Assembly (NCBI RefSeq): GCF_000002075.1
Contig: NW_004797808.1
Span: 322,102-386,101 of the forward strand
Origin: Aplysia californica
Lineage: Eukaryota
DNA: 64,000 nt
Direction: 5' to 3'
The notes below the pieces were generated by a model, which worked only from the letters and a program-made list of their open reading frames with translations, was not told the origin of the DNA and made no database searches. Both the position numbers and the translations under genes were made by a program. Below are positions 50,701 through 63,759 of the stretch, one piece after another (the first letter of the stretch is position 1; every line of letters begins with the position of its first letter).

Positions 50701-52915
50701 CCTCATTTTTTTCCAGCTGGTTGTAGCGTTGTTTATCCTTGCGTACATCTGTTCTTTGAGTAAGCATTAAAACATTCCCGTCTCATCACTAAGGAAGGTT
50801 ATCATAAGCTGCTTTTTTTTTTCGGTTGCAAACTTGCTTTTCGAGAATGTACAATTTTTTTTTTCTTAAATAGGTATATATTGCTTATAAAACGCTTATG
50901 CTGAGCTGATTGCCTTCCCTCAGGAGGACATAGAAAATTCCAAGAAAGATTGGGAGCTGGCCAGGCTGAAAGCTCTGAAGGAGGAAGAGGAACGTAAAGC
51001 TGAGCTGGAAGAAGATGAGATGCTGTACATTTACTCCAAGGATGACTCTCAGGTGAAGAAAAAAGGAAGAAAGCCACTCAAGAAAACGCAGAATGCCGTG
51101 TCACCAAGGGGAAGGGGCGGTAAGGCCTCAGTGTCAGGTTCTGATGCTGATGAAGGTTTCCCTAGTAAGCCTGGCAAGAGAGGGAGACGAGCTAGCGAGA
51201 GGTTGTCTCCTCAGAAACTCTCACCAAATCAGATAGTCCGGGGCGCTCGTGGCCCAGAGAAAAAGAAAGTCTCTGTGGTCAAAGTGATTCGAACGGGCAA
51301 ACCTGGTAGACCTCCTCTTGCAAATAGTAAGAAGAAAGTTAAGGCTGCTACAAATGTGCTGCAGAAAAAGGTTCAAAATGGTCCCAAGGGTAGAGGGAGG
51401 GGCGCTAGTTCTGCTGGGAAGAGTATCAACAATGGGGAAAAGCCTCCAGCAGCAGGGAAAACAAAAGCTGAGGTAAACGGGTCAGTAGGAAGGGGTAGGG
51501 GTAGAGGTAGGGGGTCAAAGGTGGTCACAAATGGTTCCTGCGAACCTCCAGGGGGTCTGGCTAAAGAGAAGAAGGGCAGAGGTGGTGCTGCGGTGAAAGT
51601 CAGCAATCCCACCCACCTGCACAATGGTCACACTCCTGTATTGGTTTCTGTGAGCCCAAGTAAGATTGCTACACAAACCAAAAATGCCTTACTCAAGCAG
51701 CAGGCCCAGCAGGCAGCTCACATTACTATCAGCCCTGCCCCAAGTGCCCCATCCCCGAGAGCTCAGCTCAGACTCCAGTATCCACCCAGTAGCGTAGTTG
51801 CAAATATCATCACTAGTCCTCCACAAAGACCACAGCTGAAGCCCACCACCCCCAAGAGTCCACCAGATCCAAATGTTCCACCGCCATGGTCAAATCCAAA
51901 CCTGGTGATCCGCACTCGGAAGGCAGCAGTGCATTCTCCTGTGGTCATTGCCCAGACCAGGGCCACACTGCCGCAACAGTCTCCCACCTCTGTTTTGCAG
52001 CAGTCTTTGAACCGCACGCCTTTGGCGGCTAATGCCATACCAGTTTCCATAGCTGCTGCGGCGGCGGCTGCTGGGGGTATCGCTAAAATACAAGGTACTC
52101 CAGATAGAAACATCTTTCAGTTGTTTACATCCAACACTTCAGGCATTGCTTCTCTGGGTGGTGTGACTCTCACTCCTACCATAAGGCAGGTTGGTCCTAT
52201 TGTTGGTGGTACTTCGGTGCAGGGGAACCAGCTTCGCACAGCCACTCTGATCAACCCTGCCTCACTGGTCAACTCGGCCAACCTGGCCGGTGCCAGGTTC
52301 ATCACTACGGGTATGGGGGGTCAGTCTTCCGTGGTGGTGTCAGCACCCAAGCCTGGTGCAGCTGTCAATGTGGGCGGTAACGTCTCCAACATCACCCTAG
52401 TGCCCACTGTAATCAACGCCAGTGGAGGTCAGACCATCATCAATCCGGTGAGTGGGGCCACCATTTTGAACACTGGTGGGGCTCGAGCAGTGTTGAACAC
52501 AACTAGGCTGGGCAGCCCCATCACTCTGCAGGGTTTGGGTTCCCTCCCAGTAGCCGTGAATCTCTTAAAGACCAGTACTGGTTTGAGTCTTCCGGTGCGG
52601 CCTCAGCAAATTCTGCAGACCTCCTCCCTGGCTCAGGTGGCTGGTCAGTCTGGCTATGTCCTGATCACCCCGCGGGCGGCCCGAGCTCCGACCCCAGGTG
52701 GCACCAGCATAGCTCCGGCGCCGGCCACTCTACAGAGAGTGCAGACCCCCATCTCTCTGGTTCAGACCCTACCCACCCAGAATTCCCAGGCAGCACGGGT
52801 ACATCTGTTGGCCCAAGTGCCTGCTGGGGCCACCATAGTGCAGCAGCCTGCTCCAGCACAGAAAACTGTTAACGCTCCCAGCAGCCAACCCCAGCCCAGG
52901 ACAGACGGCACTTGA
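5563..52915 (+). CDS. dom: Domino/SRCAP SWR1-family ATPase, short (SRCAP/Domino-B-like) isoform, 36 coding exons, about 2749 aa
   Basis: Manual joining of GT-AG exons keeps phase throughout (8250 nt including stop). HSA domain, [33 protein letters not shown] and [11 protein letters not shown] motifs, long spacer splitting the ATPase. N-terminal low-complexity exons are less certain. Confidence 0.92.

Positions 52916-63759: not shown

Follow-up and report, generated by a model that had tools for sequence, protein, structure and literature searches.

The Aplysia californica domino gene probably makes two alternative C-terminal tails by use or read-through of an internal splice donor

Drosophila domino is a single gene for a SWR1-type ATPase that yields two proteins, identical in their N-terminus, HSA domain and ATPase and differing in their C-termini; one tail carries a SANT domain and a Q-rich region, while the other, for which no fold is predicted, is shorter and terminates in an exon further upstream (PMC7239659). 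In D. melanogaster, the part shared by DOM-A and DOM-B comprises 2,008 residues, exon 11 being the last of DOM-B and exon 14 that of DOM-A, and the two isoforms define separate H2A.Z-exchange and H4-acetylation complexes (PMC7239659). This splice-variant mode has been extended only to arthropods and contrasted with the gene duplication found in humans, and the fly and mammal solutions were called convergent in the eLife digest (PMC7239659). We studied a stretch of 64,000 nucleotides from Aplysia californica (contig NW_004797808.1, positions 322,102 to 386,101; hereafter the window, whose own numbering is used throughout) that, judged by exact matches to a RefSeq protein, is the 3' part of the domino gene of this mollusc, the "helicase domino" locus. 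The reading that we favor, with a probability of about 0.88, is that one domino gene makes two tails, depending on whether an internal splice donor is used or is read through to a polyadenylation site. Like fly domino, the Aplysia locus would thus be one SWR1-type ATPase gene with a common N-terminal part and two C-termini. The same single-gene switch had been proposed in a first-pass annotation of the window, and it now draws support from read-through RNA, spliced RefSeq models, a pair of cDNAs from a relative and the finding of one locus in the genome.

A word search with a Biomphalaria homologue led to XP_035827815.1, helicase domino isoform X2 of A. californica. Because the tested window exons, namely those for the HSA domain and the ATPase, exon 35, the shared part described below and six downstream exons, are each found exactly and in order within this protein, we assign the window to domino; the exons were searched singly and unjoined, and the comparison with RefSeq proteins was by exact substring for each exon. 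The HSA and ATPase exons are also exact in protein P0100, which has the domains PF15790, PF07529, PF00176 and PF00271. An HSA domain is accompanied by a split ATPase (SNF2-rel_dom and Helicase_C, with a long insertion) and, compared with human proteins, the ATPase exon gives E values of 4.6e-47 for SRCAP, 1e-24 for INO80 and 1.6e-11 for EP400, and is thus of SRCAP type. On this domain content, the encoded protein is an SWR1/SRCAP-type Snf2 ATPase with HSA and EP400_N domains. The gene runs past the end of the window, the RefSeq protein having ~660 further residues.

The proposed switch lies in a composite exon, which we divide as follows:

50924-51052, + strand: shared part of the composite exon, 43 codons ending in YSKDDSQ, common to both isoforms.
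51053-51058, + strand: internal 5' splice site GTGAAG, in frame as CAG/GTGAAG at 51052/51053, its letters being also Val-Lys codons.
51053-52915, + strand: coding extension on read-through, with 620 codons and then the TGA stop at 52913-52915.
52916-54254, + strand: 3' untranslated region (UTR) of ~1.34 kb in the read-through mRNA; AATAAA spans 54234-54239, cleavage follows the CA at 54253-54254, and a GU-rich tract comes next.

The exon start at 50924 is preceded by AG, a good acceptor, and the junction from 50394 to 50924 is found in RNA, with 7-9 reads per run and one contig. The shared part is exact in XP_035827815.1 at residues 2129-2171 and conserved in ~70 proteins. The internal donor is suboptimal, with A in place of the G at +5. 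The chance of 620 stop-free codons at this base composition is ~2e-11, and the G+C content of 55% in the extension compares with 37-38% in the 3' UTR and intron; the read-through frame is therefore beyond what chance would give. The sequence elements named in the first-pass annotation are all in place: the in-frame donor at 51052/51053 is present, the extra codons, given there as about 620 to a stop at 52915, number exactly 620, and the AATAAA at 54234 has its GU-rich tract downstream of the CA.

RNA reads and contigs were placed on positions 50250-56200 (5,951 letters), the acceptor at 57732 lying beyond that stretch. They came from a set of Logan contigs (X5) and from three raw-read poly(A) libraries (X19-X21), which are 3'-end-biased. 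A 3,779-nt contig of X5 (record 2) with a depth of 114 is spliced from 50394 to 50924 over a GT..AG intron of 529 nt, and since it lacks this intron, X5 must be RNA. The same contig is continuous over 50922-53373 and crosses the donor at 51052/51053 without a break, and two more X5 contigs reach 54243 at depths of 143-176, beyond which the depth drops to 2-4, with 2-12 as the full range. Reads of X19-X21 pile up at 54031-54229, and poly(A) tails begin after 54252/54254, 15 nt past the AATAAA, in 30, 27 and 21 reads of the three libraries. The poly(A) signal and the cleavage site with tailed reads lie inside the intron defined by the donor, and the depth drops after them, as in a composite terminal exon. 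The splice in X5, the unbroken coverage and the tailed reads establish the read-through mRNA as real, along with its stop, 1.34-kb 3' UTR and poly(A) site. The two checks proposed for this part in the first-pass annotation, continuous coverage of 51053-54260 and 3' ends near 54255, were borne out by the contigs covering 50922-53373 and then reaching 54243, and by the tailed reads at 54252/54254, 21-30 per run.

Further RNA signals were seen in the same stretch. A-tailed reads also occur at 51064 (9-13 per run) and at 51086 (5-6 in two runs), all within 51057-51086. An early poly(A) site at 51064/51086 was considered and rejected, as no signal precedes it and an A-rich run of the genome lies just after the donor; these tails probably come from oligo-dT internal priming on read-through RNA. 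X5 contigs of low depth (2-12), some of them ending in adapter, are found at 54419-55908, in the intron 3' of the poly(A) site; they would fit either pre-mRNA of the long isoform or RNA derived from repeats. At position 51001, all RNA reads (24, 26 and 35) and the X5 contig have C where the assembly has T; the change falls on a third codon position, is synonymous and probably reflects a difference in strain from the reference individual.

A real transcript may still be of no use to the cell, and the read-through RNA could be an unspliced or mis-processed product, arising by intron retention and cryptic polyadenylation and having no protein function. The tail it encodes is largely of low complexity and finds no match in Pfam or the Protein Data Bank (PDB), the Aplysia RefSeq isoforms found, five in all, each belong to the spliced type, and the searches brought up no Aplysia read-through protein. 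We nevertheless consider this explanation scarcely credible. The 620-codon frame is open against the odds given above and has a coding-like G+C content; the poly(A) site is canonical in its AATAAA and CA and is marked by many tailed reads, with contig depth above anything downstream; and the tail is conserved. A HMMER scan of 1.84 billion representatives returned five proteins with 54-61% identity over the whole tail (~600 residues), the named ones among them being gastropod helicase domino proteins (Biomphalaria and Plakobranchus), and ~60 weaker matches, most of which, among those inspected, are open reading frames (ORFs) that open at the homologous exon's acceptor and continue past its donor. 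Within the otherwise low-complexity sequence, positions 51887-51919 encode an 11-residue motif that gastropods, Octopus and the brachiopod Lingula share without change; a comparison of the tails did not find it in those of echinoderms. At the junction itself, Q-V-K is invariant in 26/26 aligned read-through tails, which implies that CAG/GTN AAR is kept as donor and as codons alike; the donor is held suboptimal, with A at +5 where the consensus has G, because the Lys codon follows. The read-through isoform is, moreover, annotated in Biomphalaria, Elysia, Plakobranchus, Lingula and echinoderms. Existing Aplysia annotation includes the gene and its EP400-type isoforms, while a word search with the shared part among proteins of 365-1,160 aa found neither the exact read-through protein nor a short A-type fragment, returning only read-through ORFs of other species; the SRCAP-like isoform appears to be unannotated in the Aplysia RefSeq protein set.

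Use of the donor would instead join the shared part to exons further downstream, which are listed here together with a gap in the assembly:

57732-57767, + strand: 12-codon mini-exon, the first EP400-type-specific exon, exact in XP_035827815.1 at residues 2172-2183.
59100-59256, + strand: exon with the 10-residue post-ATPase motif, ending in phase 1, exact in the RefSeq protein.
59493-60348, no strand: assembly gap, intronic, between exons 59100-59256 and 60694-60824.
60694-60824, + strand: basic exon opening with a split-codon Thr, exact in RefSeq and conserved in Candidula and Mytilus.
61982-62122, + strand: exon with the start of the SANT domain, exact in RefSeq and conserved in orthologues.
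62878-63099, + strand: main SANT-domain exon, matching the human EP400 SANT domain (residues 2380-2440) with E 3e-11 in phmmer.
63433-63759, + strand: exon that closes with the first polyQ run and is found exactly in XP_035827815.1 (residues 2401-2509).

All six exons have good AG/GT borders and join in phase, and the junctions in XP_035827815.1 read YSKDDSQ/12-residue mini-exon/MWCPP; borders, phases and exact RefSeq junctions agree with the earlier claim that the six join in phase from 51052. The mini-exon has orthologues in Candidula, Biomphalaria, a cDNA from the Joint Genome Institute (JGI), Mytilus, echinoderms, Drosophila and vertebrate EP400. The exon at 59100-59256 matches human EP400 at residues 2247-2294 (phmmer, E 1.6e-9). 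An 8-Q run lies at 63706-63729 and, in P0100, is followed by a long Q/A/T-rich tail, so the order is that of an EP400/Dom-A C-terminus, with the post-ATPase motif, then the SANT domain and then the Q-rich region. The first-pass annotation had named SANT/Myb and polyQ in these exons, and the EP400 match and the 8-Q run uphold this; with the Pfam Myb_DNA-bind_6 model, the SANT exon alone scores 12 bits, below the cutoff. Across the gap, the phase 1 letter A at 59256 and CT at 60694 make Thr, and the orthologues in Candidula (P0010, AVT-T-RKQKQ) and Mytilus (P0032, SIT-T-RKQKQ) have zero residues between the flanking exons. Because these independent orthologues have nothing there, the gap appears to hide no coding exon and the frame to be continuous.

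The exons from 57732 onward could, in principle, form a separate gene for an Eaf1-like SANT/polyQ protein without an ATPase, the upstream gene then always ending at 54254. No junction read from 51052 was found in Aplysia in the stretch 50250-56200, and the locus is split in two in some annotations of other species (Biomphalaria, Lytechinus pictus). This is nonetheless very improbable, given that all Aplysia RefSeq isoforms (5/5, X1-X5, 3,115-3,187 aa) connect both parts through the spliced junction, that the exon phases fit, and that vertebrate EP400 and Drosophila Dom-A have the shared part, mini-exon and 10-residue motif in the same order. The indirect evidence for the spliced form, strong overall, includes a close relative of Aplysia, for which one JGI sample has two cDNA-length contigs that are identical over their first 5,585 nt. 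One of them (L011, protein P0105) has 9,400 nt and an ORF of 2,728 aa that holds the ATPase and the SANT tail together; the other (L010) has 8,561 nt and an ORF of 2,445 aa with the read-through tail, followed by a UTR of 1,086 nt with AATAAA near the contig end. The two part at the same CAG, as CAG/ATGTTT in the spliced and CAG/GTGAAGAAA in the read-through contig. Around the split, L011 continues into the mini-exon as TCCCAG/ATGTTTATT and L010 into the read-through tail as TCCCAG/GTGAAGAAAAAGGG, and the Aplysia genome at the same place has TCTCAG/GTGAAGAAAAAAGG. No conservation was found by blastn between the 3' UTRs of Aplysia and of the relative's B-type cDNA. Elsewhere among molluscs, the Arion vulgaris protein P0099 and oyster Logan contigs likewise join the helicase C-lobe (Helicase_C) to the SANT tail.

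In a six-frame search over the entire 927-Mb Aplysia assembly, the ATPase exon matched only its own locus at 100%, the next match having 53% over 47 aa, and the EP400-type SANT exon had its own locus as the sole match. Of the two best other ATPase matches, one is CHD1-like and the other a prokaryote-like Snf2, and no second SRCAP or EP400 gene was found in this search. By this search, the genome has a single SRCAP-type ATPase locus and a single EP400-type SANT locus, and the TBLASTN check recommended in the first-pass annotation has its answer in one SWR1-family locus. Among the matches is an intronless open frame of 606 aa (L003, G000:C2252:7726-7923) for an Snf2 helicase that is nearest to the prokaryotic Snf2/DEAD-box chains 1z63 and 8qy7 and resembles no animal remodeller; a contaminating contig or gene transfer could account for it.

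Several observations weigh against a two-tail domino gene in Aplysia. The Aplysia RefSeq models were themselves predicted from this assembly. No read joining 51052 to 57732 was found in Aplysia within 50250-56200, a stretch that excluded the acceptor, which lies 6.7 kb beyond the donor. The loose ends listed, 14 more being unlisted, include none at 51052, but the raw-read runs are 3'-end-biased, so this is not to be taken as proof of absence. The spliced form may be the rarer one in the X5 sample, since the X5 contig crosses the donor unbroken. Within Aplysia, support for the spliced mRNA comes from RefSeq models alone, and the read-through mRNA has been seen in RNA. On the protein side, neither phmmer with the Aplysia tail against the PDB nor hmmsearch with a profile of 26 tails (A1) found an SRCAP chain at E<=10, and the roles suggested for the two mollusc products rest on analogy with the fly.

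These protein searches bear on the name given to the read-through form, which the first-pass annotation had called an SRCAP-type C-terminus. In human SRCAP, the C-terminus is disordered and carries three AT-hooks (10.1101/2024.07.30.605802). The first ~200 residues of the Aplysia tail are strongly basic (30 K+R per 100) with RGR/GRG repeats, and the remainder is of low complexity and rich in A/T/Q/G/P/V. Against the three AT-hooks of human SRCAP, the Aplysia tail has a single GRP core, at 51305-51313 and within KPGRPPL, in a noncanonical PGRPP context, and canonical RGRPRK cores are present in the B-type tails of its relatives Biomphalaria, Plakobranchus and Elysia and in those of Asterias and Patiria. 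A Pfam scan of the Aplysia tail gave no match, and a phmmer search of the PDB with a further read-through ORF (P0054) gave none to SRCAP. Only the full-length B-type isoform of a sea urchin aligns to SRCAP beyond the split, over a region that begins in the C-lobe and stops ~30 residues after the split. Position, basic composition and AT-hook-like motifs agree with the label, and no match to the human SRCAP tail was found. We therefore use SRCAP-type on those three grounds, with no demonstrable homology of the tail.

Compared with the human genes, the Aplysia ATPase exon is of SRCAP type and the downstream exons match EP400 in motif and SANT domain; one Aplysia gene stands against two human paralogues, SRCAP and EP400. 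Human EP400 keeps the shared part weakly, just upstream of its 10-residue motif; the 43 aa of the shared part alone match EP400 with a nonsignificant E of 2. Shared part, mini-exon and 10-residue motif follow one another in this order in nemerteans, crinoids, spiders, insects, a tunicate and vertebrate EP400. Both forms already occur together in many RefSeq isoform sets, and pairs from three species show where they part:

Biomphalaria glabrata, XP_055862666.1 and KAI8753648.1: at least 1,623 identical residues, then Q/MFVSG in one and Q/VKKGRKP in the other.
Lytechinus variegatus, X3 and X1: 2,281 identical residues, then NQV/mini-exon-side sequence in one and NQV/HKSSKN in the other.
Asterias rubens, X9 and X1: 2,495 identical residues, then NKV/YISNTNEIMPMWAPPTPPQDE in one and NKV/HKSRSK in the other, a homologous pattern.

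The split residue is homologous in gastropods, sea urchin and starfish, coming right after the pattern [ST][RK][DE][DE]..Q/K. In Drosophila santomea, the A-type isoform reads SSNQ/VWISRNTMEQMP/10-residue motif and the homologous Q is residue 2013; matched to ~5 residues across two Drosophila species, the fly split is consistent with being homologous to that of Aplysia.

On these isoforms, we hold it rather likely that the choice between a donor within an exon and polyadenylation, at the codon Q/V-K or mini-exon, was present in the ancestor of protostomes and deuterostomes, and that vertebrate SRCAP and EP400 are duplicates that each kept one isoform, a case of subfunctionalization and not of convergence. 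The ancestral arrangement suggested in the first-pass annotation gains support from the Biomphalaria, Lytechinus and Asterias pairs, and in the literature searched, the 2021 Scacchetti/Becker review lying outside it, we found no statement of a bilaterian-wide conservation of the switch. An unlikely alternative is that the switch is real in Aplysia but originated independently in molluscs, arthropods and echinoderms from an ancestor with a single product. In its favor, the B-type tails of echinoderms and lophotrochozoans have little in common beyond basic residues and GRP motifs, the tail profile misses human SRCAP, and the split position in Drosophila could be matched only to the ~5 residues given above. 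Such convergence would, however, have to account for a split at the homologous residue in gastropods, sea urchin and starfish with the same mini-exon next in the spliced form, and for read-through tails that open with Val, from the GTN of the donor, in 26/26 aligned tails; that the same donor-inside-exon design was invented independently at the same codon is improbable.

Annotations of other species show some irregularities at this place. The locus is annotated as two genes in Biomphalaria (KAI8749092.1 and KAI8749091.1) and in Lytechinus pictus (an SRCAP-like and a p400-like gene; P0164, P0167, P0169 and P0171 among these models), the second gene taking as its start the Met of the mini-exon or that of the following exon. 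Such two-gene annotations are probably a side-effect of the composite exon. In Strigamia maritima, a model (P0226) has 17 residues of read-through (VPKSKKHQDSTNIRKPA) before the mini-exon, which suggests a second donor or an error in the model.

The switch between secreted and membrane immunoglobulin mu is a composite terminal exon with intronic polyadenylation, and the arrangement proposed for domino resembles it: an internal 5' splice site is set against a downstream poly(A) site, and when the donor is skipped, the start of the intron serves as coding sequence and 3' UTR. In Aplysia, skipping of the weak donor at 51052/51053 would add 620 codons, for a basic AT-hook-like and then low-complexity tail, to the stop at 52915, and cleavage and polyadenylation at ~54254 would give the Dom-B/SRCAP-like isoform. 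Were the donor used before cleavage, positions 51053-57731 would be removed as an intron and the ATPase would be joined to the mini-exon, the exon with the 10-residue motif, the SANT domain and the long Q-rich tail of the Dom-A/EP400-like isoform. Competition of the weak 5' splice site with cleavage at 54254, which lies 3.2 kb downstream, may determine the ratio of the two. By analogy with Drosophila, the products would organize an H2A.Z-exchange (SWR1-like) complex and a TIP60/NuA4-like acetyltransferase complex. The comparison is one of a mollusc with an insect, and it is by this analogy that functions are ascribed to the mollusc isoforms. Unlike in immunoglobulin mu, the choice in Aplysia would swap ~620 for ~1,000 residues of a chromatin remodeller, and it is seemingly conserved across phyla.

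The composite-exon architecture has probably led annotators in some species to call two genes. The split codon is shared by sea slug, freshwater snail, sea urchin and starfish, and this makes a concrete, testable case for an ancestral two-isoform gene. Database isoforms lend good support to an ancestral switch that was later partitioned between SRCAP and EP400; if this is true, the two vertebrate genes would have divided the ancestral isoforms between them after duplication.

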